A DNA stretch of 64,000 nucleotides from NCBI GenBank assembly GCA_946965045.2, contig OX337238.1, forward strand, positions 496,001-560,000, read 5' to 3'. This document shows positions 13,013 through 35,474 of the stretch, piece after piece. The translations under genes were made by a program, and so were the position numbers. Positions within the stretch are counted from its first letter, which is position 1, and every line of letters starts with the position of its first letter. The notes below the pieces were generated by a model, which was not told where the DNA came from, ran no database searches, and was given only the letters and a program-made list of their open reading frames with translations. The DNA is from Epithemia pelagica. Lineage: Eukaryota > Protista > Bacillariophyta.

Positions 13013-14992
<1,980 letters not shown>

Positions 14993-15521
14993 ACCGGATA
15001 CGGCGGTCCACGACAATGGACAATAACAAGACACACATATATGCTCGTAACATCAACGGTAAAGCTTCGTTGTCTTGTTGTTACCCAGGCAAGCAACATG
15101 TGGAAAGAGTCGTTCTCTCTCAATGTGTGCCACGAAAAACGGAGAAATGGTGTGTTCCTTCGAGCCTCCCACCCACGACCCTATGGCGACACGAGCACAC
15201 ACACACTGACACACACACGTCACTCTGTGATCCACAGGCAGGATGAGTGGATATAAGACTATATGGTTGTTCGATTCACAGTATCAAAAGCGCGTCCATG
15301 GTAGAAAGTGGAAGCGAGAGAATTTGGGTACATTGCGGGGATAGAGACGTGAGTCAGGCTTTCCGTATATAGAATGATGATATGCTAGTTTCTCTTTTTA
15401 TCGAAAGCTATACAATTGATGTGGACCGCTTCATGTAGCGTCATGAACAGATGTGGAGCCATTGGAAGAAGGAATGCAGAAAGAACGTATAATACACAGC
15501 ATAAGACCAACAAGAGTGCAA

Positions 15522-18500
15522 TCAATCTTCCAAGAATTCCGTCATGTTGGAAGCACTGAGGTAAATGGTGGAGAAGAATTGAAAGAATTCATCCTTGGTC
15601 ACCCAAAAGATTCCATCGTCGGCCACCACCGGATTCAATGCTCGTTTAATTTGGGGATACTTGTCCCAGCCAGGACCGTCATCGTCAAACTCTCCATCCT
15701 CAATTTCTCCCTTGCCCCATGGATTGCGGACCTTGATCAAGTCAATGGGAGTTCCAGCCACGTCATTGTGGCATTCAATGACCGAATACGCATGATTATC
15801 CACTAATCCAGCGTCTCCGCTCTTGTCCGAACATCCGGCACCGACAATGTAATTCACGTCATCCCAGGCACACATTTTCATGAATAGTTCTTCTTGAGTC
15901 AGTTCGACATTGGGACCACCGCCGCCTCCCACCTCGGGCCAGGCATTGCGCCACAACGACTGTTCGCCTTCGTGCGGACAATTGGCATGGCGAGCCCATC
16001 GTCGTTCGTGCGGATTGTATTTGCCATAACAGGCAAACTTGCCCGTGGCCGGATTGATTCGAATGGTATACTGCTCTTTGCAACCCGTCAAGAGGGCCCA
16101 GGCGTGAGTGCATTGTCCACCCGTCACCTTATCCCATCCACCACAATGAATGGCCAAGGCCTTTTCCAAATAACAGACCCACAATTCTCCGTCCTCCGAA
16201 GGTCGGGAGGCCAAGAGCTGTCCCGTTCCATCGGCCGTGACGGGCAATCGTTCATCCACGACAATATCTCGTTCGGTCCAGGTTTCCAGGTCCCAGAGTG
16301 ACAAAATGTATTGATTGGGTCCGTCCAGGGGCCGTTGCTCCAGTTTGGTCGTTTTTCGGTAAATGTGTTTAATGGCTCCGTCAAATTCGGCCAACGACGA
16401 AATGCCCGACAAGAGCCAACAATCTCCCACCGTTCCTTGGTGAATGTCCGAGGGATCCACGTCGCCAATAATCTTGAGGTTGGGGGTATCGCCCACCCCC
16501 ATGCCTCGCCCGGGGAGAATGGGTTTGTTTTTGGGAGAATGCAATTTGCGTCGTTGATGCGTCATGTGATCGGTATGGGCATCCCGGTATTGATTGGGCA
16601 AAGTGTGTTGCGGAAAGGGTGGAAGTCGTTCGTAGTACTGCGTCAAAATCGTCATGGGACCTCGGGGCGAAATTCCGGTGGGCACATGTCCCTTGCTGCC
16701 CTCGCGATGAATCAGGGTATACCGTTGTTGATTGGTGGGCCACTCCAGCATGTTGGATTGATAAAACAAGTACAGGTACTTGTCCGGATCGGCCCGAAAT
16801 TTGTCCCGTCCCTTGGCAATGGGTGCCATGACTTGTTCGCTCTGGCCCTTTTCTTCAAAGACAAAACTACCGGCAAAGTGTTGTTCCAAAAATTTCCACT
16901 TGGCGGGATCGGCACCGGCCCAAGGACTATTGCTGTGGTTGTTGTTATGGTTGTGCGCGGCCGAGGGCGAGGAAGCCGCAACCTTGCCACCCTTGCCCGT
17001 GGTACGGGGCGCTCGAGGTTCCATATCGCGACGATCGGCTCTCGGAGAGGCTGGAGCAGCAGGAGCAGCAGCAGCGGAATTCTTGTGGCGTGGAAACAAT
17101 TTGGTGGGTTGGGGCCGACTGCTGTTTTTGGTGGGAGCGGATGCCGCAGGAACTACCGAAACGGAGGGCGTGTTATTGTTGTTGGAGTTGTTGTTGTTTC
17201 GCCAGGGCAGAGTGACGATTGGTTTTCGTTTGGAAGAAGGAGATGCCGGATTGGTGCTGCCAGTGTTGTTGTTGTTGTTGTTATTCTGGAACCCGGCCGA
17301 GCCTCGCCGACCCGGACTCTTGTTGGGACGATACCGCTGTGTACTGCTGCTTCGTGATTCCGGAGGAGGTGCTGGTTCCGATCGAGTATTATTGTTATTG
17401 TGGTTGTTGCCACCCCAAAAGCGTCGGGATGGCGAAGACGGACGAGTGGGTCGAGACGACGATCGTGGTGGTGACGCTTGTCGTCGGGAGGGTGAGGCGG
17501 GTCGAGTGGTTCGGGGTTGAGACGTTGAGCGAGGTTGTTGGGGTGAGGAGGACAAAGGGTTCTTTCGATTAGTAGAAGTGGTGGGAGTGCGAATAGTAAC
17601 GGGTGGTGGTGGTCCTCCTCCTCCATGAGACGACGGAGAAGAAGAAGTGCTGCTTCGTCCGGGCGCAGAGGACCGCAAGGCGGACGAGGAAGTCGACGGA
17701 TTGGGATTCAATTCCTGCGGCGTCGCCGTGGCAATGGACTGCAATCGTTGTTTTGACAAGGGTCCTCCACTTTGTTGTTGCTGTTGCTGCTGTTGCTGCT
17801 GAACCTGTCGTTGAATGGCCGCCAGGGCCGTTTCATACTTGTCCAAAACAGTGCGAGAACTACTATCCTTGGCCAGGGCCGTATCGAGTTGCAACAATTG
17901 GAGCAAAATGGGATGCAAATCCCGCCAGGACCGATTGACCACTTCGTCCAACATCCAATAATGTTCGCGAGCCGCCGTGCGATAGACCTGTTGCGCATGG
18001 TGCAACTTTTGTTCGTTGCGGTCCATCTTTTCCGTGCCACTCCCGCCGGGGGCGAACTCTTGTTGCTGTCCCTTGGTGAGTTTGCGAATCTTGGCCTGAT
18101 GCAAGGCATCGACCTTGGTGGTGTAATGGTCCACTTCCCGCCTCAAGGCATTGGTCTGTTGCATGTCATTTTGAATCCGCGTCGTGACGGTGGACTGCCA
18201 CAAGTCGATATAGTCCAACAGTTTGGTTTGAGAATCGACCGCCCGACGATCCAAGGTGGTTTGCGACACGGTCCTTAAGGCTTGTGTGGCGTCGGCCATG
18301 GACGTGGCATAGGGAGTGTCATGACTCAGTGCCGACAAGGCTTCGGCCATCTATTATTGTATATACGTATTAGGTCCAAGAAGAAGAAGAAGAACCGCAA
18401 CAAGAACACCAAAACGCTGTGTGAGACTGCCAAAAAAGCAAACGGAACCCAATGTACCATGTGTTTTCGTTGGTTCGTACCGACGCTTGGGCCTGGGCGG

Positions 18501-18693
18501 TTTGAACCATGGCGGCATGACGTTGTTTCAAGGCGGTGCGCAAAGAGCGCAGTTGGGGACAAAATTCCTCCTTGTACTTTTGTTGCAAGGCATCCAATTG
18601 GGCATGTCGATGCGGTGATTTTTCCACCATGGATTGCCGCAACAAGACACCCATGCGAGGTTTCGGAGTGTTGTTGACCGCCGAGGTACTCAT
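15522..18693 (-). CDS. Calpain-like cysteine protease paralog 1 (BAR-like coiled coil, basic S/P/R/N linker, CysPc); exons 18693-18481 and 18350-15522
   Basis: QGTVGDCWLLS (Cys), NHAYS (His), VRNPWG (Asn), CYLEKALAIHCGGW; GTACGA/TAG intron 18480-18351, phase 0. Confidence 0.88.
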
Positions 18694-18699
18694 ACTACT

Positions 18700-18780
18700 A
18701 TACGAAACTACTTATCTCTAGCTAACCCGAATCCCTAATCGCTCTGCCGCGGAATAACGAGTAAAGCGGCGCCAGCCGCT
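18700..18780. repeat. 81-bp direct repeat, copy 1, containing GC hairpin AGCGGC-GCCA-GCCGCT
   Basis: Identical by eye to 19952-20032. Confidence 0.92.
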
Positions 18781-19066
18781 GGCCTCGAGAATGCAGCGGG
18801 AAAGAGCGATGAACCCCAACCTTAATAAATTGAAAAAGCCAACGGAAGCACGTGCCACCAGATTACGCCCATGAAGTTTGCGACAGTCGTTGAAGTCTTG
18901 GATTCGTTTGCTAGCCAACGAATGGCTTAGGCTTAGGCCTTTTCTCATTCTGTTGGAGAGCAACGAAACAACGCCTGTCGGATTGATAGTCTAGTTTAAC
19001 GCTCCCACCTCTCCCGCCCTCTGGCCTACCATCCAGCTTGGGTTTAGGAGAGGGTTTCCTACAGCT

Positions 19067-19915
19067 CTAGTGTCTATTCTACCCCGGTACTCATATGAGG
19101 ACAAATCCTCATATGAGTACACTTTCAAAAGAATAATATCAAATCAATCATGTACTCCTAAGTGGTTTTTAAGTTCAGATTCGTAATCTCCATACTTGAA
19201 AACGTACTCCATGATATTCTCATGCTTTAATTGTGATGAGTAGTGACGATACAGTATCAAAAACAGAATTCATCCATGTTGGAGCGATGGTGATTTTCTA
19301 AACTGAGTGTTTGGAGGGGATAAAACAGAAGACAATCAACCTGATGAGTGTTATTATCCCTAGTGTTGATGACCAGTTGTCCTTTGCCTGATTGAGGCAT
19401 CAGATTGAGAGAATTCAGCCAAAACAAGCCTCCATCACCACAGAGGAAAATTCTGAGACCGTAACAGCATTCGACACCAATACAGGGTCAAATGCGGCGT
19501 CTGAGCCTCCTGCACCCCAACACTTCATGTACAGGAAGCACAGACACCTTCAGGGAACCAGGAAAGTGCAGTGGGAGACTCAAATCCGCCAATGTCTGTG
19601 AAGACAGTTGAACTCCCTCGACAAAATGGTTGGATTTGCCCTACATAAACTGGATGGATGCATTTTCCAACACACGTAGTGTCTTGCCACATAAACATAG
19701 AACATAATGGTTGATTGTGGTCTATTACTTTTCTATTTTAGTTGTTCATTTTTTTGGTAGAACGGCAGATTCCCATGGTTGGGTTACATTTTTTGTCGAT
19801 AGCTTCGTACAAAAGCTACTGTGGTCTACGTAGATATGATTTTAGTAGGATTGTCCTCATATGAGGACAAGCGCTGTCCTCATATGAGGACAAACCGGGG
19901 TAGAATAGACACTAG
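19067..19915. mobile_element. Non-autonomous TIR element (MITE-like, ~850 bp) with palindromic subterminal repeats
   Basis: Perfect 22-bp inverted repeat CTAGTGTCTATTCTACCCCGGT (19067-19088) / 19894-19915; two CTCATATGAG palindromes inside each end; AT-rich interior without long ORF. Confidence 0.8.
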
Positions 19916-19951
19916 TAAAGCCATCTCCACTCCTACAGTCATTGGTCTTGG

Positions 19952-20032
19952 ATACGAAACTACTTATCTCTAGCTAACCCGAATCCCTAATCGCTCTGCC
20001 GCGGAATAACGAGTAAAGCGGCGCCAGCCGCT
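19952..20032. repeat. 81-bp direct repeat, copy 2
   Basis: Identical by eye to 18700-18780. Confidence 0.92.
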
Positions 20033-20180
20033 TAAGGGAAAACCTATCGTTGGGGGACGAGCATAGACTTTAGGCATGGCGCGCGCGGCGAAAAATTGGG
20101 TAGGAATCCTACATACGAGAAAATCGTTGTACACCCCTCTGTTATGTACTCCTGGGTGTTGGTGCACACTACACGTCAAA

Positions 20181-20459
20181 ATGCCCAACTATCTCCTGCA
20201 GTACGACCTTGACACCGTTTACATTCAAAACAATGGCTACCACAGATCCACCGTCTACAGACATCTTGCAGGGGAACTCAGTCAACGCGGCTGGATCAGA
20301 CACCAAAGGTCCTGCTGGAGGAGCAACGGCAAAACGGCTCTTCAAGCACAAAACGACGCAGACGACATTGCCGACGACCTCGAAAACCAGTATGGAGTCG
20401 GAGTCTTCGGACGACTCGAGTACGAGCGGCATCTCAATTTCATCCAAGTGCGCCCGTAA
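20181..20459 (+). CDS. VapD/Cas2-like small endoribonuclease candidate (92 aa)
   Basis: NYLLQYDLDT...VYRHLAGELSQRGWIRHQRSCW follows the VapD pattern Y-h-x-[FY]DL...Y..L..EL...G[FW]...Q.S.[YW]; size matches VapD (~90-95 aa). Confidence 0.55.
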   Translation: MPNYLLQYDLDTVYIQNNGYHRSTVYRHLAGELSQRGWIRHQRSCWRSNGKTALQAQNDADDIADDLENQYGVGVFGRLEYERHLNFIQVRP

Positions 20460-20772
20460 GAAACAAAAGAAACGCGACAACTTACCCACAGAGGGTCATC
20501 TCAAGATTCGGGCGGTGGTGGATGCTGGCTCCGCTTGGGAATTGGACCTAGAACGGGTGCACGGTCTCACCAACGAAGAGGCTTGTATCGTCGTGTCCAA
20601 GATGGCTCCCTATGTCAACCAGGACACCTTCCCGGAAAATACAAGTGGTGATCGTTTCATGGATTTTGCGAAGCAGGGGTGGGAGCATATGCGAAAGTTG
20701 AAGGAAATCAGGAAGAAGTACCCAGAATGCCGCGGTCAAACCTGCGTTGATGGAAAATGGATCATGCTGTAA
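20233..20772 (+). CDS. Hypothetical 179-aa protein overlapping the VapD-like ORF in another frame
   Basis: ATG in ACAATGG context; overlapped half is S/T/K-rich and disordered-looking, non-overlapped half looks globular (HLKIRAVVDAGSAWELDL...FMDFAKQGWEHMRKL). Confidence 0.5.
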   Translation: MATTDPPSTDILQGNSVNAAGSDTKGPAGGATAKRLFKHKTTQTTLPTTSKTSMESESSDDSSTSGISISSKCARKKQKKRDNLPTEGHLKIRAVVDAGSAWELDLERVHGLTNEEACIVVSKMAPYVNQDTFPENTSGDRFMDFAKQGWEHMRKLKEIRKKYPECRGQTCVDGKWIML

Positions 20773-20889
20773 AGAAGAAAAGAGTGGGTGCATCTGTTTT
20801 TGTTCACTGTTTTATTTGGTGGATCTCAGTCCACCGGCCACCTAGCCAAAAACCTAACTCGATCCACCAATCGTAGATTTTAATGGGCT

Positions 20890-21105
20890 ATGAAAGAAAA
20901 AAAATTTACATACGGCAGTACAAAATATCGAGAGGATTGCGTTGAAAGATGCGACGAAGGCGATAAGACTCCTGTGGATTGGGTTAGAAAGGGGCAAGAT
21001 ACTGCAGTTTTCCTGGCTAAAATGGCTATGAGACCAGGCGGCCCAGTGGATGTGCCGGCGGGATCTATACCTACAATTAGAGGCAAGGGCAAGAATAGAA
21101 TATAG
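20890..21105 (+). CDS. Small hypothetical protein (71 aa)
   Basis: ATG-initiated ORF followed by AATAAA; sequence complexity looks protein-like. Confidence 0.35.
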   Translation: MKEKKFTYGSTKYREDCVERCDEGDKTPVDWVRKGQDTAVFLAKMAMRPGGPVDVPAGSIPTIRGKGKNRI

Positions 21106-21984
21106 CTCTGAATAAAATTATCAGGGTTTAATGGTAAAATAATAGTGTATCATAAAGAGGTGCCGAGTGCCCATGTGCACAATCATGCTACGATAACTAC
21201 GTTTCAGAAACATCCTTGGGGGCGGGGATTGAACCCCTGTTAGGTCTTTTAAAGTAGTGGCCCCTTTTACTGTTTGAACAATGGGTGACTGTTGCGATTG
21301 CAATTCGAAGAATGCCTATCTGGCGCCTAGCTAGCGCCTAGGTAGATGTGCACGGGGTAAGAAGTACTACTACTGGAAACGACGGCCAATCTCTTGGGAT
21401 ACGGAGGATGCAGATATATCAGCGATTTCTCTCTTTCTCTCTCTTCTTGCTTGCCTGGTCTGTATGGGAAACGAATGATACAAACACCAAAAGTGGTTCC
21501 AAAATGGCTCTGTCAAGTGATCGAGAAAAAAAAGAAAAGTTGAAAGACACGCGACAGTTTTTGGGGTCCAACCTCGAATTTGGCCCAACCATAATCAGAT
21601 GGTCTTTCTCCCCCAAAGTCCCAAGACCTGTCAATCACTCCCTATCGGAAAGAATAATCGTTTCCAATAATATGGACCGTCATATCTCGCGAGGTTGTAA
21701 CCTTACCATAGTGGTCCGGCATGACTGTTTCCACTTCACCAAAGAAAATCAATTGGGTGTTCTGTAGTCGGTTTTGTCACTTTTTGGCAATTGGAGCTAG
21801 GCTGGACTATGCTGGCGAGTACCTGCACACTCTTGTGTGATTATCATTAGAGTGTATATGAATGAATGAAACAATGGCAACTTTCTTGCATCATAATACT
21901 TTTTGATCTAAACCTACATGGATACTATCAAATCTCTGGTTGGAGCGGTTGTGGATGTGCGTTCCATTTTTCGTTTGGTGTGTT

Positions 21985-24900
21985 TTAATCCTCCAAGAAT
22001 TCCGTCATGTTGGAAGCACTGAGATAGACGGTGGAAAAGAATCGAAAGAATTCTTGCTTGGTGACCCAAAAGATTCCATCATCGGCCACCACCGGCTTTA
22101 GTTCGGCCTTGATTTGCGGATACTGATCCCAACCGGGACCGTCGTCATCAAATTCGCCATCTTCAATTTCACCCTTGCCCCACGGATTCCGAACCTTGAT
22201 CAAATCCACATCGGTACCGGCCACATCATTGTGGCATTCCAAGACCGAATAGGCATGATTGTCCACCAATCCGGCATCGCCACTCTTGCCCGTACAGGCG
22301 GCACCAATAATGAAATTCACATCGTCCCAGGCACACATTTTCATAAAGAGTTCTTCCTCGGTCAATTCCTGTGTCATGTCACCGCCACCGCCGGCTTCGG
22401 GCCACGGATTGGGCCACATGTTTTTTTCGCCATCGTGCGGTGAATTGGCCAATTTCGAATGTTGCCGCGTGTTGGGATTGTACTTGCCATAACAGGCAAA
22501 CAATCCTGTATCCTTGTTGATGCGAATCGTGTACTGCTGCTTACAGCCCGTCATGAGGGCCCAGGCATGGGTGCATTGACCACCGGTAATCTTGTCCCAT
22601 CCACCACAATGAATGGCCAAGGCCTTTTCCAAATAACAGACCCACAATTCACCATCCTCCGACGGCGTCGTGCCCAAGAGCTGACCACTCCCATCCGCCT
22701 TGGCCGCCAAACGCTCGTCCATCACAATGTCCTTTTCCGTCCACGTTTCCAAATCCCACCTGTGTTGTTTGTGGATCGCAAGAAAAAAAATAAACAGGAT
22801 AAATGAGGCGCATTCGTCATGGGATGCAATAGTTTTCATCCAGACACATACACACACACAAGACTTACAACGTGATAATGTATTGATTGGGTTCCGGAAG
22901 AGGCCGTTCGTGCAATCGCTCCGTTTTCCGGAACAAGTGTTTGACGGCACCATCAAATTCGGCCAGACAGGAAATACCCGACAAGAGCCAACAATTTCCG
23001 ACCGATCCTTGATGAATATCGGATGGATCCACGTCGCCAATAATTTTGAGATCGGGTGCATCGCCCACACCCATGCCACGACCGGGCAAGAGCGGCTTGT
23101 TCTTGTCCGAATGCAACCGGTACCCGCGATGCGACATGTGATCGGTATACTCGTCCCGGAATTCCATTGGCAAATCGTTATTTTCCATCGGTGGCAAGCG
23201 TTCGTAGGTTTGCGTCAAGACCGTCATGTGGCCCTGCCCGGTACCCGTGGGAACATAGCCCTTGGTACCCGCACGGTGCACATAATTGTATCTCTGATGT
23301 TCCAGAGGCCAGTCCAGCATGTCGGTTTGGTACACCATGACACTGTACTTTTCCGGGTTCTTTTTGAATTCCTTCTTGCCCTTCTTGATGGAACCGAGTC
23401 GTTCTTCTGTCTCTCCCAAGGTGACATAGGCAAAGCCACCGGAAAAGGTCTCCTTGGTGACTTTCCACTTTTCCGGATCGGCCGCTTCATACTCTTCATG
23501 CGACGTTTTGCCCGGGGAGTCTCCATCCGAACGCTTGGTTCCCTTGCCCGAAGCTCGTGGAGGACGCCATGGCATGCGACCAGGTCCACTTTCACTGGAC
23601 TCATGGCCCATGTTGCGCGCCGCTCCTCCCTCCTCGTCCGGACCAAAATCGTTGTCAAACCCATCATTGTTGTTGCCAAAGCCTTGTCCGTCATTGTCAA
23701 AACCATTAGTATTGTTGTTGCCAAAGCCGTGATTGTCAAAACCATTGTCATCTCCAAAGCCTTGTCCATTGTCTCCATTGTCGTAATCTTGGCCGTCATT
23801 GTCGTTATTGCCGAAGCCCTGCCAATTGTCATGGCCATAGTTGTCGTCGTAGTCATTGTGACGGCGATCAGCATGGTCGTCATTGCCGCTGCCACTGTTG
23901 AACGAATCCTCATCGTATTCCCGTTCGTTGCTGTACCGAGGATTGTTGTCGTGGTTGTACGCTTGCCCATTGTTGTTGTTGTCGTTGTCGTACTGGTTGT
24001 CGTAGTCGTTGGGAGTGTTGTCATAGTCGTTGTTTCTGTTTTGAAAGTCGTCATCATCGTCGTCACCGTCAATATCGTTCATGCTATAGCCATTGTCGTT
24101 GTTGTTGTTGTTGGAATAGGGTTGCGCAGTGCGGTCGTCACTGTCACTGCTCGTCGCCATGGCCGGCGGCGGTCCATCGTCGGGATCATGAAAGGACGAG
24201 TCGGGAGAGTCAGGCGTCATTTTGATATCATAGGGTTGAGGATCTCGATCGGGCAACACATGAGGTCGTTGTTCATCGTAGGGACGTTCGTAGGATGGAG
24301 CTTCGTCTTCCGGCCACGGCGACGAGGAGGCTTGTTCTTTTTGGGGGGGCCAGGGGGAGGAAGGTGCATCGTCTGCCGTGTAACTATTGTGGCGGTCGTC
24401 ATCGTCATCGTCATCATTATCGCGGTATACGGGAGGTGGCGCTTGTGGCATGGCCGGTCGATGGTCGTCCTCGTCATCCCTGTCGCGGTTCCGATTGTTT
24501 TTCTTGTGGTTGTTGCCTTTCGGAGAGGATTGGGGGGATCGACGTGCCACATTTTCGTACTTGTTGGGTTCGTTGCTCGTGGCATAGGGTTGAGGGACCC
24601 GATCCCGCGTCGACGGCGCTCCGGTCGTCAATTCGTGTGGTTTGGCCTTTTGGATATCATTGAATCGATTGTCGGGGGGAATTTGATTGTCCTCTTGCAA
24701 ATGATGCAAATCGTCCACGGCCCGTTGCAAATCGCGCAAACTTTCACTCTCGTCAAAATGATGATCCAAATCAAATTGCAACAATTTCAAAATCAAGGGA
24801 TGCAAATCGCGCCACGATCGATCGACCAATTCTCCCATGAGCAAAATCAAGTGCTTGGCGGACCGATGGTAGGCCCCCACGGCTTCTTGATGCTTTTGTT

Positions 24901-25673
24901 CATTGCGTTGCAACTTTTCCGTCTTGTCTTGAGGCACCGGCTTGGCTTGACTTTGCAACTTGTCAATTTGGGTCTTGAGGGAGGTGACCTTGTCGGTATA
25001 ATGATCGGCATCGCGACGCAATTGATCCGTCATTTTGTAATCGGCATTGATGCGGGCCGTGACAGTATTTTGCCACAGGGTAAAGTAATCCATGACGCTG
25101 GAGCTAAACTCATTGGCCCGGTCCAAATCCTTTTTGCGTGATTCCACCATGGCCGTATCGTTGGCCTTGGTCGCATACGAGGCCGGGGACTCCTCACTCA
25201 TGGCCGAAAAGGCTTCGGCGACCTGGAATAATACAGACAGACATATACATACACCAGTGACAAAACTGTTGTCAGACCACAAGAAGAAAGAACAAGTGTA
25301 TCTACAAACATTGTGGAACGGACTGGGATCGACAGATTGACGGTCCACGAGCAAGAGGAGCCAACACAAACAACCACCACCACCAACTTCAACAACCACA
25401 GCTTCCACAACAACAACAACAACAACAAAAACACAGAACATGCAAGCCATTTCGGCGTGTGTGTGTACGTACCGCAACCCGAGACGTGGCCGTTTGCATG
25501 AGAGATTCATGACGTTTCTTCAAGGCTGCATTGAGATTCTTAAAGTTTTTGCACAATTCATCGTACTTGACTTTCAACCCCTCCACTTCATAATTGCGAT
25601 TGGGTGATTTTTCGACATTGTTGGATTGCAAAAAGTTGAAACTCATGCGACGAGTCCCAATCGCCGACGCCAT
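21985..25673 (-). CDS. Calpain-like cysteine protease paralog 2 (BAR-like, acidic D/N/G linker, CysPc); exons 25673-25473, 25222-22869, 22759-21985
   Basis: QGSVGNCWLLS, NHAYS, VRNPWG; introns GTACGT..CAG 25472-25223 and GTAAGT..CAG 22868-22760 (joins IITL-WDLET). Confidence 0.88.
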
Positions 25674-26756
25674 GCTTGCTGCTGGTGGTGGTGTTTCACA
25701 AGAATACTACGTTCCAGATTGAATCGTTGGCTCGTCTTCGATTGGACTGGTTCGGACTCGACGTTATCCACAGTGCCGTCCAAGCAAGAGATATGAGAAA
25801 GAAAGGTCTCTCTGTGGTCTCTCTCTATGGCCTTTCCAAAGTGTGAAGGGGGGATCTTACTGGTTGAAAGAAAAAAGTGGTGAAGACTTTTTGGTATGAC
25901 TCTTGATGGGGAGTCGACCAAGACCAAAAACTACCCTACCCAACAAACTGTCTCACTTTCTCCCCCGATCCCAACCAGAACCACAGAAGTTGGCCCAAAT
26001 GATGGTCGCTCTTCAGACGCACAATCTGTGATCACTACCTACCTCGCTAAAAAACGTAGGTCTCTACTAGAAACAGTTTTTCTGTGATCTCAAACGAGAA
26101 GGAGCGACATCCCATCAAAATTCAACGTGGTCCCCCACCGTAGTACTAACCGGGCCCGACGATGCTTAACTTCGCTGAGCAGACGGGAAGCGGTGCTGTC
26201 ATCGTGGTATGGTCGTTCCTACAATGCGTGCTAACCCAAGAGTATTTGAACGCCATTTACCATTCCAATCTTTGCCCGAAGAGCCTCTAGCAGATCTTCA
26301 AGGATACGGTCCCAGCGTAAAAAATGCTTCCCCGTTTTACATAGAAACTCCTTGATGATGCACTGCATCTCACAAGGAGTACCTAGTCCACCACATGTGA
26401 ACACAAACCCATGGATCAATCTTGTTGGCATGGTTCGGATGAAAAAGCTTGCCGCCACAAATAAATAAACTCTTTCCACTGTGGGCGGAACTCTACATCA
26501 TGTAATGATCTCTACGTATCTTACACATTCCCAGTTTCCGAAGAGAAAAATATCAGGAAAGTACTCCTACCTACATAGGTGGGAAATACCAACTAGAGGA
26601 GAAGCGAGGAATCCTAGCTATGGTAGAGAAGGCGAACCCCATGGTAGCAGGGCAATTGTTTTGCATGTCGTTGAAATCGCCAGTGGACCGGCCTGCGCGC
26701 AACTTCTTTTTTTGGGGGTCTGTGGCTACAATACGAAGAAAAAGTCTTGCTCCACC

Positions 26757-27563
26757 ATGGCACGAAAGACAACGCCGGCCCGTCGACCACGAAGCAACAG
26801 CAGGAGTGACACCCATGGCGGGTCCACCACCACCAAAGGTCCAGCATCAAGAGCGAAACGGTCCAAAGCGGGTGATGCCGAAACGCAAAACGCAGCTCCC
26901 AAGCACGTCTTGCAATTGTCCAACCAGGACGATGCGGAGGACGAGGAGGTGCTTCATATTCTCGTGAATGAAAAAGATCGGCGTGTCCGGAAACGAGCGT
27001 TGGACTTGTTGCGTGGTGTCGACTTGGACTTGTCTCAAAATAATGGCGAGGACGACGAATTTCCACCCTTGAAGCAACGTGTGGAATTGCCCGTTTTGTA
27101 TGGGGCGTTGAAAATTATCAAGGAAATTGGACAGGGAAATGCCCATGAGGAGGAATCAGATTTGACCGAGGATGATCGGCAGTTGATTGAAGATGCCTCC
27201 TTGGCAGTTCCCTATCTCATGTACAAGCGGTTTTACGAACAGTTAATGTTGCCACGGACCATGGGGGGATTGGCCTTTAGTGACGCCAAGGCCATGCAAG
27301 TGGCTCGCGATTTGTTTTTGGCCATGGGACCGGCGTGTTGTAAAGAGACCGTGACGGACCAACAATTGTCCGAAGCCTGTCCGTCTGTGAAACGAATTGA
27401 TGCTCGAAAAATACTTCCGTCCCTTCATGCGATTGGCAAGGAAGCTCGCAGCCAATTGGAACAAGTAGAAGCACTCTTGCACGAAGGTGAGGAGGAAGAA
27501 GAGGACGACGAAGAGGAAGATGTAGAATCTGATGATGAGCATGACCACAATGCTGAGGACTAG
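26757..27563 (+). CDS. Hypothetical protein with basic N-terminus and acidic C-terminus (268 aa)
   Basis: CCACCATGG start context, MARKTTPARRPRS..., helical core, poly-E/D tail. Confidence 0.65.
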   Translation: MARKTTPARRPRSNSRSDTHGGSTTTKGPASRAKRSKAGDAETQNAAPKHVLQLSNQDDAEDEEVLHILVNEKDRRVRKRALDLLRGVDLDLSQNNGEDDEFPPLKQRVELPVLYGALKIIKEIGQGNAHEEESDLTEDDRQLIEDASLAVPYLMYKRFYEQLMLPRTMGGLAFSDAKAMQVARDLFLAMGPACCKETVTDQQLSEACPSVKRIDARKILPSLHAIGKEARSQLEQVEALLHEGEEEEEDDEEEDVESDDEHDHNAED

Positions 27564-30224: not shown

Positions 30225-30451
30225 TGTTGGAACAAGAAGCAAAACGAACACCCAACCGAAGTAGCCCAGCAGGATTTCTCAGTCACAAATGTACGATCAC
30301 CAATGACCCACGAGGGCAGCACAAACAAACAGTTAGCAATAATCATTCTTTTAGTTTTACATGGTATCTCACAGACAGGACGGCTGTGGTTACTAGAGAA
30401 CAGAATAAGGGACGCGGCCTTGAGAAGGCCATCAGATACGTTCGTTCAACA
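30225..30451 (+). repeat. 5' LTR of copia element 1
   Basis: TGTTGGAACA...CGTTCAACA, repeated at 35564-35790. Confidence 0.97.
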
Positions 30452-30466
30452 TAAAACTAAAAGAAT
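30452..30466 (+). promoter_or_regulatory. Primer-binding site complementary to LTR bases 30345-30359 (putative self-priming)
   Basis: TAAAACTAAAAGAAT is the exact reverse complement of ATTCTTTTAGTTTTA. Confidence 0.75.
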
Positions 30467-30476
30467 TATTGACAGC

Positions 30477-33400
30477 ATGTCGGGCCGCGGCGGACGCGGG
30501 TACCGACGAGGTATTGCCAGAAAGGCAGGAAGGGGAGGTGCCCCGATCGGTGCCTCAGTAAGTAAAAAGGAGGTGACAGACTATTTCTTTTACCTTGGAT
30601 CGGCAAAGCAGGCCTCCGATTATGAGACAACGTCGGAATTTCTCATCAACCACATTCGCAAGACATACACATATGGCAACGATATTGGGACAGCCTTGGA
30701 GACGCTGACAGAAACAGACTTGGACAGCCATAAACCAAAATTGGAACTTTACACCAAAGCAGACTTGGATGATGATGATGCCCGTGCAGTCGCCAATGAA
30801 CAAAATAAAATGGAGTTTAAGGCAGATTATGATCTCTTCCGGAAGCGGAAGACAGCCTATGAAGATAACAGAACAAAGGCCTATGCATTCCTATGGGAGC
30901 GATGCACGAAAGGGATGCAGGCAAAGCTCGAAGCACGCACAGATTTCACCACTGTAAAAGGAGACCCACTGAAGCTTCTGGCCGCAATCAAGCAACATGC
31001 TCTAAGCTATCAAGATCACAGGTACGGAATGTCCATCATTCTCGATGCCTTGCGCGTGTTTCTCAACACCAAGCAAAAGGAGAACGAATCGCTGCATGAT
31101 TTTACCAAGCGCTTCCGCACGGCAAGTGACGTACTGGTGTCACATCTTGGTGGACCACTGTTAATGCAAAAATATACAAGTGAATTATCCACATGGCCAA
31201 AGGCACACACCGGAACACCAAGTTCAGCAGAAATAGCGGAGAGAAAGTCAAAAATCAAGCTATGTCAAGAAGAGGCATACAAACATTTTACTGCCTTTGT
31301 ATTCTTAACCAACACAGATCAAGCAAAGTATGGATCGCTCGTGACTGGTTTGTCAACACAGCAGTCGCTTGGGAACGACCAGTATCCAAAGTCCATGATA
31401 GAAGCAGCCAATGTGCTAAGCAATCATCGGTTCGATAATGCGGGCAATGGCAAAGGAAAGGACAAATCTGAGAAGGAAACACGACAGCAGCCTTCAGATG
31501 AAACGAATGAAGGTAATGACACACCACTAACTCTGTCATTCGCACAAGCCCTACAGGGACGGTGTTACTGCTGCGGAGAGGCAGGGCACATCGCTACAAA
31601 CTGCCCAGAAAGAAATAAACCAAAGAGTGAATGGGCCATTAATAAAGCAAAGGGCTTGGATCAGGCACATGCACAGCAAATTGCAGGTTCTCTGGCAGGG
31701 ACACCTGATGTACTCGAAGACGACGATGACACCGGAAGTATCGGTGCCGCCACACAAGCAACGAATACAAGTTCTCGCTCATCCAGGCCGGGATGGTGCG
31801 GTGCCCACGTCCAGTTTTATCAGGCAGGTGAAATGCGAGATTGGATCCTTCTGGACAATCAGTCCACTACAAGTATATTCTGCAACAGGCACCTTGTCAA
31901 AGATGTACGCCCGACCACGGAACCAATGGAATTGATGACCAACGGCGGGCGGTTAGTGACAACAGAACGTGCAACAGTACCAGATTTTGGGGAAGTGTGG
32001 TTCAACCCGAAGGCCATCACTAATATTCTGAGTTTACACGATGTCACCAAAAAGTATCGGGTGTCATACGATTCAGACGGGGAACCTGCCTTCCTGGTTC
32101 ATGTCCCAGGTGAGCCGGTCAGATTTCAACAAAGTCCAGCCGGACTGTTCTATTTTAAACCATCGTACTCGACAGCAAATGTGTCACATGTGACAACGGT
32201 TGAAGAGTTGAAGCAGCTTTACACTGACAGACAAGTGAAACGGGCGACGAGAGCACGTGATCTTCTTCATGCGCTCGGGAATCCATCTCTTAGTGACCTG
32301 AAAGCTGTTTTAAAAATGAATGCAATTGCAAACAATCCTGTAACGACAAGTGATTTGGCCATTGCCGAACACATATTTGGCCCAGATGTGGGGAGTCTCA
32401 AAGGGAAGCTAACGCACCGACCCCCACTACCTGTTCTGGACAATTACATTGAACTCCCGATTGAACTGACGGATGCTCATCATAATGTCACCTTGTGTAT
32501 GGATACTATGAAAGTCAATGGTCTCGCCTTTCTAACAAGCGTGTCACGCAACCTCCAATATCGGACCGCAGAATGGGTGCCTAATACGTTGGCACAAACC
32601 TATGCCTCTCGTTTCCGTGTGATATGTGATCTTTATCGGAATGGGGGCTATGCACTAACGAAAGTTCATTGTGATAATGAATTTCGTGCAATGTTTACCC
32701 GGTTTCCTGTGGAGGGCGTCACACCAAACTACGCCAATCCAAACGACCATGTTCCAGAAGCTGAACGGAACATCAGGGTGCTCAAAGAAAGGATCCGCGC
32801 CACGTTCCATCGGCTGCCATTCACCAGCCTGCCCAAACTTATGCTGAAAATCCTGGTGATGGAATCCGCCAAAAAGCTCAATTTCTTCCCGGCCAAAGGG
32901 GGAGTCTCCCCTTATTACAGTCCTCGCGCCCTTCTTCACCGTGTTGGCTTGGACTATGACAAACATTGTCGCTTCTCTTTTGGCGATTATGTACAAGCAC
33001 GTCAAGACAACCACCCCACCAATAGCCTCAAGGCTCGCACCCTCGATTGTATCTACTTACGGTTTACTGCCAATCAACAGGGAGGGCACGAATTAATGGA
33101 CTTACACACCGGTCGGCTTATCACAAGGGGTCACGTGGTGGGGGTTCCCCTTACCGAACATGTTATCAAGGCTGTCAATGCCATGGCTGCCGCCGAAGGA
33201 ATGCCTGACGGCCTCAAAGTCACCACCAAGTCAGGCACCATCCTCTACGACAGTGCCTGGCTTGCAGGAGTGCACCACGACAATGACGATCCAACCAATG
33301 ACGATAATGACGATCCAACCAATGACAATCCAGCCAACCCAGACGACGCAGACGATCCAGACGACAACGACGATCCCAATGGCACTCCCATTGTAGATGA

Positions 33401-35474
33401 TGGCGGCTCCACCACCGACGAGCATGAGGGCACACATGATGACATCGATCCAAATTTCCTTGATGATGATGCACCAAATGAATATCACACTGACAGCAAC
33501 GACGAGCTGCCAGGAGTGAATGGTGATGGCAGCGAAAATGCAGGAGTGAACGAAAACGACGAGGCTCCAGCAAGTGGTGATAACGACGAGGAATTTGACG
33601 GGGACACCATGGACGCAAGTGAAACCACAGGAGTGAATGATGAAGGAGCGTCTTCATCGCGACCACGAAGAGCCACTCGCCCCCCAAGCCGATACCAAGA
33701 CTATCAAATGATGGAGATAGAATGTGGTGAACAAGGTGCCAGAATCATCGCCACTGTCATGGAATACCTCCTCCACCAGCACCACATCGTGCGGCATCAC
33801 TCACATGCACAAACATATAGTCTCAAGAAAGGACTGGCAAAGTTTGGCCAGCGTGGATACGATGGAGCGTTCAAGGAAATGCAGCAACTCCATGATCGTA
33901 CCTGTTTTCGCCCACTCCATGCGAGGGATCTCACAGATACAGAACGAGCACGGGTCATCGAAAGCCTGTTCTTTCTCACAGAAAAGAGAGATGGACGAAT
34001 CAAGGGCAGAACATGCGCTAATGGGAGTGTTCAGCGCGCGTGGATGGGACGAGAAGACGCATCCAGCCCAACGGCAACCACGGAAGGCGTGCTGATCACA
34101 GCCGCCATTGATGCCCATGAACAACGAGATGTACGTGTGGCAGACATCCCTAACGCCTTCATTCAGACGGCAGTCCCTGGAGCACCAGCAGCCAAAGGAC
34201 ATCGTATCATCATGCGAATACGTGGGCCGCTCGTAGACATGCTCCTCAAAATGAATTACAGCCTGTATGCACCCTACGTCGTACAAGAGAGAAATGAAAA
34301 GGTCTTATATGTGGAGGTTATCAAGGCAATCTATGGGATGCTACAGTCAGCCTTGTTGTTTTACAAAAAGCTAAGAAAAGACTTGGAGAGCATCGGATTC
34401 AAAGTGAATCCGTATGATCCATGTATAGCCAACAGAATGGTCGACGGCAAACAACAAACGGTAACGTGGCACGTGGACGATTTAAAAATCAGCCACAAGT
34501 CTGCAAAAGTCAATGACCGGTTGCTCAGTTGGCTAGAAAAACAGTATGGTGATCCAAAAATCGGAAAGATCAAGGGGTCAAAGGGACTTGTGCATGACTA
34601 TCTCGGAATCAACCTCGACTACACCAAAACGGGAGTGGTTAAGGTCGACATGCGTTCATACGTCAAGGACATACTCAACGACCATGACGAAAAGGAAATC
34701 AAGGAAGGGCAAGCATCGCAGCCATGGACCGATGGCTTATTCAAGATTGATGAATCTCGGAGAAAACTCGACTCAGACAAACAGGACCAATTCCATACCA
34801 CAGTGGCCAAAGCTCTCTTCCTCACAAAGCGCGGCAGGCCAGATATCTTGCCAGCAGTGGCGTTTTTATGCACACGGGTCAAGGGAGCCACAGAGCAGGA
34901 TTGGAGTAAACTGATTCGTTTGTTGCGATTCTTATACAAGACAAAGGATGATGTGCTTGAACTGTCCATCGACAACCTCAGCATCATCAAATGGTATGTT
35001 GATGCAGCATTTGCTGTCCATGGTGATATGCGAAGTCACACAGGAGCGATGATGACTCTCGGAAAGGGGGCAATACAGGCGATATCAACGAAACAAAAGC
35101 TTAATACACGAAGTTCGACAGAAGCCGAAATAGTTGGGGGAGACGACACCTTAGCCCAAGTCATGTGGACGAAGAAGTTTGTTGAAGCGCAGGGTTACCC
35201 CATCACCCAGAATATTATGTATCGCGACAATCAGAGCGCAATGAAGATTGAGGAAAATGGTCGTTCCAGTGTCGGAAAGCGCAGCCGTCATCTCGATATT
35301 CGCTTCTTCTTTATCACAGACCTGATCAACAAGAAGGAAGTGCAAATCGAGTATTGCCCAACGGATCACCTAGTCGGGGACTATATGACAAAACCATTGG
35401 TGGGTAGCAAATTTCGTGAGTTTCGGGCTCAAGTCATGGGCTGGAAGGCACCCAGTTATCCAACGTCAAAATAA
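30477..35474 (+). CDS. Gag-Pol polyprotein (zinc knuckle, protease, integrase, RT, RNase H), 1665 aa
   Basis: CYCCGEAGHIATNC; ILLDNQST; HCDNEF...HVPEAERNIR; ADIPNAFIQ, YGMLQS, WHVDDL; YVDAAFAVH...STEAEI...DNQSA; IN precedes RT (copia order). Confidence 0.95.
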   Translation: MSGRGGRGYRRGIARKAGRGGAPIGASVSKKEVTDYFFYLGSAKQASDYETTSEFLINHIRKTYTYGNDIGTALETLTETDLDSHKPKLELYTKADLDDDDARAVANEQNKMEFKADYDLFRKRKTAYEDNRTKAYAFLWERCTKGMQAKLEARTDFTTVKGDPLKLLAAIKQHALSYQDHRYGMSIILDALRVFLNTKQKENESLHDFTKRFRTASDVLVSHLGGPLLMQKYTSELSTWPKAHTGTPSSAEIAERKSKIKLCQEEAYKHFTAFVFLTNTDQAKYGSLVTGLSTQQSLGNDQYPKSMIEAANVLSNHRFDNAGNGKGKDKSEKETRQQPSDETNEGNDTPLTLSFAQALQGRCYCCGEAGHIATNCPERNKPKSEWAINKAKGLDQAHAQQIAGSLAGTPDVLEDDDDTGSIGAATQATNTSSRSSRPGWCGAHVQFYQAGEMRDWILLDNQSTTSIFCNRHLVKDVRPTTEPMELMTNGGRLVTTERATVPDFGEVWFNPKAITNILSLHDVTKKYRVSYDSDGEPAFLVHVPGEPVRFQQSPAGLFYFKPSYSTANVSHVTTVEELKQLYTDRQVKRATRARDLLHALGNPSLSDLKAVLKMNAIANNPVTTSDLAIAEHIFGPDVGSLKGKLTHRPPLPVLDNYIELPIELTDAHHNVTLCMDTMKVNGLAFLTSVSRNLQYRTAEWVPNTLAQTYASRFRVICDLYRNGGYALTKVHCDNEFRAMFTRFPVEGVTPNYANPNDHVPEAERNIRVLKERIRATFHRLPFTSLPKLMLKILVMESAKKLNFFPAKGGVSPYYSPRALLHRVGLDYDKHCRFSFGDYVQARQDNHPTNSLKARTLDCIYLRFTANQQGGHELMDLHTGRLITRGHVVGVPLTEHVIKAVNAMAAAEGMPDGLKVTTKSGTILYDSAWLAGVHHDNDDPTNDDNDDPTNDNPANPDDADDPDDNDDPNGTPIVDDGGSTTDEHEGTHDDIDPNFLDDDAPNEYHTDSNDELPGVNGDGSENAGVNENDEAPASGDNDEEFDGDTMDASETTGVNDEGASSSRPRRATRPPSRYQDYQMMEIECGEQGARIIATVMEYLLHQHHIVRHHSHAQTYSLKKGLAKFGQRGYDGAFKEMQQLHDRTCFRPLHARDLTDTERARVIESLFFLTEKRDGRIKGRTCANGSVQRAWMGREDASSPTATTEGVLITAAIDAHEQRDVRVADIPNAFIQTAVPGAPAAKGHRIIMRIRGPLVDMLLKMNYSLYAPYVVQERNEKVLYVEVIKAIYGMLQSALLFYKKLRKDLESIGFKVNPYDPCIANRMVDGKQQTVTWHVDDLKISHKSAKVNDRLLSWLEKQYGDPKIGKIKGSKGLVHDYLGINLDYTKTGVVKVDMRSYVKDILNDHDEKEIKEGQASQPWTDGLFKIDESRRKLDSDKQDQFHTTVAKALFLTKRGRPDILPAVAFLCTRVKGATEQDWSKLIRLLRFLYKTKDDVLELSIDNLSIIKWYVDAAFAVHGDMRSHTGAMMTLGKGAIQAISTKQKLNTRSSTEAEIVGGDDTLAQVMWTKKFVEAQGYPITQNIMYRDNQSAMKIEENGRSSVGKRSRHLDIRFFFITDLINKKEVQIEYCPTDHLVGDYMTKPLVGSKFREFRAQVMGWKAPSYPTSK

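Follow-up and report, generated by a model that had tools for sequence, protein, structure and literature searches.

Within a 64-kb stretch of DNA from Epithemia pelagica (contig OX337238.1, positions 496,001 to 560,000; hereafter 'the window', at its full length of 64,000 nucleotides), two overlapping open reading frames form a compact cassette, in which the first (ORF1) is predicted to encode a protein with the fold of the VapD and Cas2 nucleases, and the second (ORF2) begins inside the first, in another frame, and would encode a partner protein. A preliminary description had placed a frame of 92 amino acids there, together with one of 179 amino acids beginning 52 nucleotides (nt) downstream, and those coordinates proved exact (Table 1); that observation is confirmed, and the interpretation built upon it, of a mobile and co-translated nuclease with its partner, is supported in part, in that the fold, the overlap and the dispersal of the unit all stood, with the qualification that amino-acid selection in the overlap acts on ORF1 only. 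The account that is favoured, with modest confidence, is that the cassette is a dispersed, toxin-antidote-like pair, comprising a VapD-like nuclease and its partner, and that both proteins are produced from one messenger RNA by leaky scanning. Within that account we infer the nuclease activity, the co-translation, the binding of the partner, the toxicity and the way in which the unit spreads. The relatives of both frames indicate, at the level of sequence, that ORF1 and ORF2 are real genes and not chance reading frames.

Fold and family of the ORF1 protein

An exhaustive HMMER search of 1.84 billion representatives recovered 50 relatives of ORF1 at E<=1e-3, including 16 at E<=1e-10, most of which are 91-94 amino acids in length and match from end to end; a word-index search with the same protein returned only the window's own, and none of the ORF1-family clusters looked up has an NCBI or UniProt record, or a name, beyond 'hypothetical protein'. 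Neither ORF1 nor ORF2, scanned as a single sequence against Pfam, NCBIfam, PADLOC, PHROGs and the PDB, gave anything above threshold, the only hints being sub-threshold ones of Cas2 for ORF1 (E=0.09 for TIGR01573, and E=0.024). In an alignment of 21 family members, nine positions (M1, Y8, D9, V25, Y26, Q42, S44, E68 and R91) are at least 90% conserved, and these include the N-terminal Asp9 of a YDLD motif and the Gln42 and Ser44 of a Q-x-S motif, both of which the preliminary description had singled out.

When the profile built from those 21 members was compared with the PDB, the best match was the VapD protein of Helicobacter pylori (3ui3, E=4.9e-4), followed by VapD from Campylobacter jejuni and Haemophilus influenzae and by several Cas2 proteins. 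The profile alignment pairs D9, I15, Y26, Q42, S44 and W46 of ORF1 with D7, L13, Y25, Q41, S43 and Y45 of the H. pylori protein (HP0315). Mutations at four residues of HP0315 (D7, L13, S43 and D76) were those that reduced its RNase activity most (PMC3351183), and three of them (D7, L13 and S43) are aligned with D9, I15 and S44 of ORF1; the catalytic pair of C. jejuni VapD likewise consists of an Asp and a Ser (PMC11980593).

Structure prediction led to the same family. The AlphaFold2 model of ORF1, with a mean predicted local distance difference test (pLDDT) score of 90.3, displays the topology b1-a1'-a1-b2-b3-a2-b4 (strands at residues 3-10, 39-42, 45-49 and 76-84; helices at 12-17, 22-35 and 53-71), which is the topology described for VapD (PMC11980593). 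A Foldseek search of the PDB with that model ranked VapD of H. influenzae, C. jejuni and H. pylori first and Cas2 proteins next, with VapD accounting for six of the top eight chains (template-modelling (TM) score 0.59-0.77, probability 1.00). ORF1 has the modified ferredoxin-like fold, the Asp that closes beta1 and the Ser of the beta2-beta3 turn, so that the VapD/Cas2 fold proposed in the preliminary description, with its Asp and Ser retained, was borne out by profile and structure searches alike. That ORF1 is a VapD/Cas2-fold gene is held with high confidence.

The partner protein and its overlap with ORF1

The ATG of ORF2 lies in the +1 frame of ORF1, and no ATG separates it from the ORF1 start, a layout that is compatible with leaky scanning, as had been suggested. 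A 127-residue version of ORF1, beginning at an in-frame ATG at position 20076, was considered and rejected, its extension not being conserved in relatives; homology with those relatives starts only at about 20156-20175, and every ORF1 relative begins with Met-Pro, for which reasons 20181 is taken as the real start.

Six relatives of ORF2 were found directly, at 97-50% identity, and more through its C-terminal domain, down to 30%. Residues 1-81 of the AlphaFold2 model have pLDDT values below 50 and residues 87-178 have values of 73-88, in agreement with the earlier proposal that the first half of the protein is disordered and the remainder globular. The C-terminal domain, about 95 amino acids in length and encoded entirely downstream of ORF1, contains ten invariant alignment columns (among them W-E, F-P, G-W and C-x-x-Q); it has no fold match in the PDB, where the top-ranking hits were fortuitous matches to ion-channel helices, and no sequence match in either the PDB or Pfam. 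Between tail and domain, a basic cluster of Lys and Arg occurs at the same position in all ORF2 relatives, and its resemblance to a nuclear localisation signal suggests that it may act as one.

The association of the two frames is asymmetric. Wherever the ORF2 C-terminal domain is encoded, a relative of ORF1 immediately precedes it, with the two frames in the same relation, as would be expected of the two small adjacent genes of a type II toxin-antitoxin module; the converse fails, in that some ORF1 relatives (at loci L018 and L020) have no partner. ORF2 starts inside ORF1 in all nine partner-bearing lineages, usually at an ATG at +52, and an ATG lies exactly at +52 in nine loci whose ORF1 identities range from 45 to 98%, with no intervening ATG in eight of the nine. 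Eight lineages (the window's own clade, the L001/L014 clade, L004, L005, L003/L015, L016, L017 and L024) keep the ORF2 frame open all the way from near the start of ORF1 to the ORF2 stop (188-235 codons), and they do so down to 45% identity in ORF1 and 30% in the C-terminal domain. L023 is the exception: a single stop truncates its tail, and ORF2 there uses a later ATG that is still within ORF1. At L016 and L017 gene callers annotate two non-overlapping genes; the upstream part of the frame and the ATG at +52 are nonetheless present. Thus the overlap is conserved in every relative that carries the partner domain, as the preliminary description had anticipated of homologues preserving both frames.

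The openness of the ORF2 frame exceeds what chance predicts. Under a null model in which each ORF1 protein is kept and written with the codon usage of the window, the probability of a stop-free frame is 0.10-0.40 per lineage, and the observation of such a frame across ORF1 in eight of nine lineages has a P of about 1e-5. The corresponding frame in the partner-less L018 and L020 contains 1 and 5-6 stops, respectively. The composition of the overlap differs in the same way: in most partner-bearing lineages C makes up 42-49%, and T 8-18%, of the third positions of ORF1, which are second positions of ORF2 (the values for L023 being 39% and 19%), against 30% C and 23% T in the long reading frames of the window and 16-34% C in partner-less ORF1 relatives. 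As a consequence of those C-rich positions the ORF2 tail is about 50% Ser, Thr, Pro and Ala, the summed fraction being 0.48-0.53 in most partner-bearing lineages and 0.42 in L023, compared with 0.22-0.38 in the same frame of relatives that have no partner.

The third forward frame (+2 relative to ORF1) is also stop-free, for 112 codons at 20213-20548 (P 0.01-0.02 under codon shuffles). It was rejected as a third gene, since an ATG occurs only in its last codons, too late to serve as a start, and its openness is explained as a side effect of the T-poor third positions of ORF1.

The pattern of substitution across the cassette demonstrated which frame is constrained in which part. Within the overlap, variation by codon phase tracks ORF1 (0.333 at third, 0.233 at first and 0.157 at second positions), and downstream of it the same quantity tracks ORF2 (0.435, 0.252 and 0.186, in the same order). 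Nei-Gojobori estimates, made on pairs of distant lineages, gave ratios of nonsynonymous to synonymous change (dN/dS) of 0.18-0.40 for ORF1 and 0.7-1.6 for the overlapped tail of ORF2, and of 0.10-0.37 for the ORF2 C-terminal domain in most of the measurable comparisons between lineages; the proportion of synonymous differences (pS) of ORF1 in the overlap (0.51-0.63) was lower than that of the ORF2 C-terminal domain (0.73-0.87) in most pairs. Both codon-phase variation and dN/dS follow ORF1, which marks it as the older, constrained frame. Amino-acid selection in the overlap therefore acts on ORF1 only, and ORF2 is constrained there in its composition and its openness, with the lowered pS as a further sign of the second frame: the tail is kept open and hydrophilic but is not sequence-specific, as is expected of a leader that serves to place a start codon. 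The earlier suggestion of overprinting holds in so far as the second frame is kept open beyond chance, and needs the qualification that the residues of the tail show no purifying selection; of the two frames in which dN/dS was to be determined, ORF1 is constrained and the overlapped part of ORF2 is not.

Those same observations bear on two explanations in which ORF2, as drawn here, is not a protein read from inside ORF1. According to the first, ORF1 is a genuine VapD-fold gene, the overlap goes untranslated, the C-terminal domain is made from a later start or an internal transcript, and the open frame is a by-product of codon composition. A dN/dS of about 1 in the overlapped part of ORF2, with its second codon positions varying most, is what such an explanation would lead one to expect, and it is further favoured by the stop-free third frame of the window's clade, which is open despite having no ATG, by two relatives, of which one has an early stop in its tail together with a later ATG and the other lacks the ATG at +52, and by the fact that permuting ORF1's own codons leaves the +1 frame open 72-95% of the time. 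Against this, most lineages have no ATG at the start of the C-terminal domain, and the only in-frame ATGs lie inside ORF1, so that some overlap is needed in any case; C-rich third positions are found only in partner-bearing lineages, which points to selection for the reading of ORF2; and the frame is open in eight of nine lineages even though synonymous sites are largely saturated. An untranslated overlap is accordingly considered unlikely.

The second explanation, in which a single fusion protein joins the VapD domain to the C-terminal domain, either because ribosomes shift by +1 close to where ORF1 ends or because a short frame-shifting intron is removed there, would account for the change of conservation from the ORF1 to the ORF2 frame exactly at the ORF1 stop, and the recurrence of the same arrangement in independent assemblies shows that it is no sequencing error. 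The stop, however, is the natural end of ORF1, given that partner-less relatives share the same ...Val-Arg C-terminus at 91-94 amino acids; a frameshift near that stop would need neither an open ORF2 frame nor a conserved ATG 225 nt upstream; and only two GT...AG pairs (36 and 38 nt) lie near the junction, neither of which restores the ORF2 frame, and no tool predicted an intron. A fusion is for these reasons very improbable, and the translation of ORF2 from inside ORF1 is regarded as probable.

Dispersal, decay and genomic setting of the cassette

When 22 related loci were compared with the window by blastn, only the segment from 20156/20175 to 20789/20807 aligned, even at identities of 93-98%, and up to 4 kb of the relatives' flanking DNA found no match anywhere in the window, which itself contains a single copy of the cassette. 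Homology is limited in the same manner among the relatives, two of which (L003 and L015) share 95% identity across no more than 698 nt. About 6-25 nt separate the 5' bound from the ORF1 ATG, and 15-70 nt separate the ORF2 stop from the 3' bound; boundary alignments revealed no terminal repeats, target duplications or poly(A) tail. In all, 12 distinct contexts of the cassette were seen, and where neighbours of the relatives have Pfam matches these are eukaryotic or algal (OPA3, a chlorophyll a/b-binding protein, a DEAD helicase). Because the contexts are unrelated, the unit is dispersed or mobile, as the preliminary description had proposed, and that it is mobile, or recently was, is judged rather likely. 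For a eukaryote, the recurrence of such a unit at unconnected sites in related algae is unusual. Three diverged copies from one microbial-mat assembly, two of them at nearly equal coverage, fit the presence of several copies per genome.

The two frames differ in how often they are interrupted. ORF1 is broken in four lineages or alleles, with intact sister alleles at two of those loci, and ORF2 is uninterrupted in 19 of 19 loci. Single in-frame stops interrupt ORF1 at L010 and at L001, L002 and L013, the 98%-identical allele of which (L014) is intact; L011 carries one frameshift, and the 99%-identical L012 is intact; and at L005 the ORF1 start and first strand are read in the ORF2 frame. At L004 the open ORF2 frame extends up to an upstream ATG, and the only start available to ORF1 is a later ATG. 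Two database proteins (P0035 and P0036) switch from the ORF1 frame, in which they start, to the ORF2 frame, and are either further copies with frame changes or assembly errors. The loss of the nuclease with retention of its partner is a prediction of toxin-antidote logic, and offers an indirect hint in that direction; that the pair does act as toxin and antidote is put forward tentatively, with slightly more doubt than conviction.

An alternative account of the same copies is that they represent gene-converted paralogues of a domesticated host module, in which an antiviral or RNA-processing nuclease would be accompanied by a regulatory, and perhaps nuclear, subunit. Such a module would be consistent with purifying selection on both conserved parts, with the position of the window copy in ordinary gene-rich DNA between two calpain genes, with cassette bounds that are free of terminal repeats, target duplications and poly(A), and with diverged copies at similar coverage in one community assembly, which fit paralogues in one genome. 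Yet homology ends within about 25 nt of the start codon and 35 nt of the stop codon even at 95-98% identity, and since it stops at the cassette edges simple duplication does not explain the dispersal; moreover, repeated ORF1-null alleles with intact ORF2 are expected of a decaying toxin and not of needed subunits. A domesticated host module is thus thought improbable, somewhat more so than an untranslated overlap.

The setting of the cassette is eukaryotic, and reads as the nuclear genome of an alga, possibly a diatom. Near it are genes for kelch, cyclophilin and spermine-synthase-like proteins, a copia-type element and a 5S ribosomal RNA (rRNA) gene, and calpain-family genes flank it on both sides (Table 1).

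Table 1. Positions, in window coordinates, of the cassette, its parts and the principal features around it (aa, amino acids).
Feature	Coordinates	Strand	Remarks
ORF1	20181..20459	+	92 aa, stop codon included (20457-20459); VapD/Cas2-fold protein, putative endonuclease
ORF2	20233..20772	+	179 aa, stop codon included (20770-20772); partner protein, +1 frame of ORF1
Dual-coding overlap	20233..20459	+	227 nt; ORF1 codons 18-92 = ORF2 codons 1-76
ORF2 N-terminal tail, residues 1-81	20233..20475	+	Disordered, about 50% Ser/Thr/Pro/Ala
ORF2 basic Lys/Arg cluster, residues 72-81	20446..20475	+	Straddles ORF1 stop codon
ORF2 C-terminal conserved domain, residues 85-179	20485..20769	+	Three helices and a beta-hairpin
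Cassette outer bounds	20156..20807	+	Extent common to relatives; flanks outside unrelated
Calpain-family (Peptidase_C2) gene	15522-18350	-	Flanks cassette, opposite strand
Calpain-family (Peptidase_C2) gene	21985-25510	-	Flanks cassette, opposite strand
5S rRNA gene	26099-26220	-	Full length, 79 bits
Copia-type retrotransposon	30303-35474		1723-aa ORF with reverse transcriptase domain RVT_2

Upstream of the cassette, an element of about 850 bp at 19067-19915 has perfect 22-nt terminal inverted repeats and no long reading frame, and looks, on its sequence, like a non-autonomous DNA transposon. A 16-nt palindrome is present in two copies inside each of its ends, giving four occurrences in the window against 0.01 expected, and the element is bracketed by a perfect 81-nt direct repeat (18700-18780 and 19952-20032), one copy of which directly adjoins the upstream calpain gene at its 5' end, with the other about 150 nt upstream of ORF1.

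Neither a CRISPR-like array, within 14000-27000 of the window, nor a match to Cas1, among the ten neighbouring reading frames scanned, was found. No viral genes occur near the cassette, its Pfam-matching neighbours in the window being cellular apart from one copia element; the genes called at the fetched related loci carry only cellular Pfam matches; and the IMG/VR and GTDB genomes yielded no close relatives, in a pattern search for which absence is weak evidence. The best match of the ORF1 model in BFVD is an uncharacterised protein of Sylvanvirus sp. (A0A3G5AH94, E=2.5e-7, TM score 0.87). A 40%-identical ORF1 relative (P0064, seen in 95 blocks of the collection) occurs on contigs (L019-L022) of 3.3-6.8 kb whose sequence recurs about every 3146 nt, in either a tandem array or a circle, with no ORF2-like partner and with other reading frames that look non-coding; for this last reason a plasmid or virus is provisionally disfavoured as the source of these 3.15-kb repeats.

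The suggestion that the cassette consists of chance open frames, or is the functionless remnant of an integrated virus, can appeal to the lack of named records among the family clusters looked up and to the giant-virus origin of that best viral match. It must contend with the 50 relatives, the clear purifying selection and the confident fold, as well as with the cellular neighbours (and single copia element) and the empty pattern scans of IMG/VR, and is given scarcely any credence.

Proposed mechanism and comparison with known systems

In the mechanism envisaged for the dispersed pair, one capped messenger RNA would cover both frames. The first ATG carries C at +4, and those scanning ribosomes that initiated there would yield the nuclease; others would pass on to the next ATG, whose +4 position is G and whose frame is invariably that of ORF2, and would yield the partner. 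The outcome would be the eukaryotic expression, at a fixed ratio, of a two-gene module of prokaryotic style. The partner might then bind and restrain the nuclease, as antidote or as regulator, and the pair would constitute a selfish or defensive toxin-antidote unit that is copied, as a unit of about 650 nt, to unrelated sites. In its most extended form, which is rated somewhat less likely than not, this proposal describes a VapD-type toxin-antidote module that derives from a prokaryote or virus, that now spreads itself in algal nuclear genomes, that has overcome the eukaryotic restriction to one protein per mRNA by extending its antidote frame back over the toxin gene, leaky scanning then giving both products from a single transcript, and whose antidote has a new fold.

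Several observations weigh against this account. ORF1 falls short of the curated cut-offs for CRISPR_Cas2 (PF09827, matched by two of 21 family members with a best E of 0.059) and TIGR01573 (13 bits against a cut-off of 24.5), and the counterpart of D76 in beta4 is not clearly conserved, its column holding E, D, H, T or K; the alignment of ORF1 with 3ui3 ends before beta4, and the nearly invariant Glu68 sits in alpha2. It is for those two reasons that ORF1 is described as a divergent, VapD-like member of the VapD/Cas2 superfamily and not as a member of a curated family. The ORF2 tail shows no constraint at the level of amino acids, and the P value for its openness is optimistic, as the nine lineages are related. 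One relative has its tail cut by a stop and in another the triplet at +52 is not ATG, from which it follows that the long overlap is not indispensable. The assemblies in which ORF1 seems to be broken are metagenomic and of low coverage, and errors may account for some of the breaks; an impression of recent mobility could arise through gene conversion between old paralogues; and the ORF2 C-terminal domain matches none of VapX, VapY and VapW in sequence or fold (the partner chains of 6zn8 and 9kan included).

The literature regards nucleases of the VapD/Cas2 fold, together with their antitoxins, as prokaryotic, and no paper that links VapD with diatoms or with a eukaryotic nuclear genome came up in full-text searches. 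If the proposed account is true, the cassette would represent a VapD-type two-protein module that lives and spreads in eukaryotic nuclear genomes, and would bring a new family of partners alongside the three VapD antitoxins already known. A clear example would be provided, too, of an operon-like pair adapting to cap-dependent translation: by overprinting the upstream gene, the downstream one gains a disordered leader, and the two start codons come to lie close together. The existence of relatives without a partner, and of overlaps that differ in length among relatives, makes the cassette a simple case for studies of the origin of overlapping genes.

The closest comparison is with VapD itself (HP0315, and the proteins of H. 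influenzae VapXD and C. jejuni VapWD), which ORF1 resembles in its length of about 92 amino acids, its topology and its conserved Asp and Ser. It differs from those proteins in an identity of only 8-18%, in scores below the curated cut-offs, in its eukaryotic nuclear location, in a very short C-terminal extension and in an acidic residue of beta4 that is not clearly kept. Cas2 shares the fold (with matches to 2ivy, 4es1 and 5xvp) and the Asp of beta1, and ORF1 has weak matches to TIGR01573 and to the Cas2 model of PADLOC; there is, however, neither array nor Cas1 nearby, and VapD outranks Cas2 in both searches. The best viral structural match, A0A3G5AH94, is a protein of 107 amino acids with 27% identity to ORF1, but it comes from a giant-virus metagenomic bin, and no relative of ORF2 was found in viral contigs.

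The partners of VapD are, like ORF2, small proteins encoded beside a VapD-like gene, and theirs is the role proposed for it. VapX and VapY are SH3-like barrels and VapW is a homologue of VapD (PMC11980593). The C-terminal domain of ORF2, in contrast, is helical with a terminal hairpin. Moreover, in VapD modules the partner lies upstream, whereas here ORF2 lies downstream and overlaps.

The wtf genes of fission yeast produce a poison and an antidote from one compact locus through alternative starts, and form multicopy, decaying families whose products share one frame and are membrane proteins. The cassette is similar in that candidates for poison and antidote come from one compact locus, and in being multicopy and decaying; it is unlike wtf in that the two products are unrelated and read in different frames, and in that the candidate poison has a nuclease fold of prokaryotic type.

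Overprinted pairs that are read by leaky scanning are known mainly from compact viral genomes. ORF1 and ORF2 share with them the use of different frames, the close spacing of the starts without an intervening ATG, and the disorder and weak constraint of the younger, overlapped part. They differ from the viral pairs in being cellular and nuclear, and in that the overlap comprises the tail only, so that the functional domain is not overprinted and the overlapped tail serves instead to bring the start codon of the partner near the 5' end.

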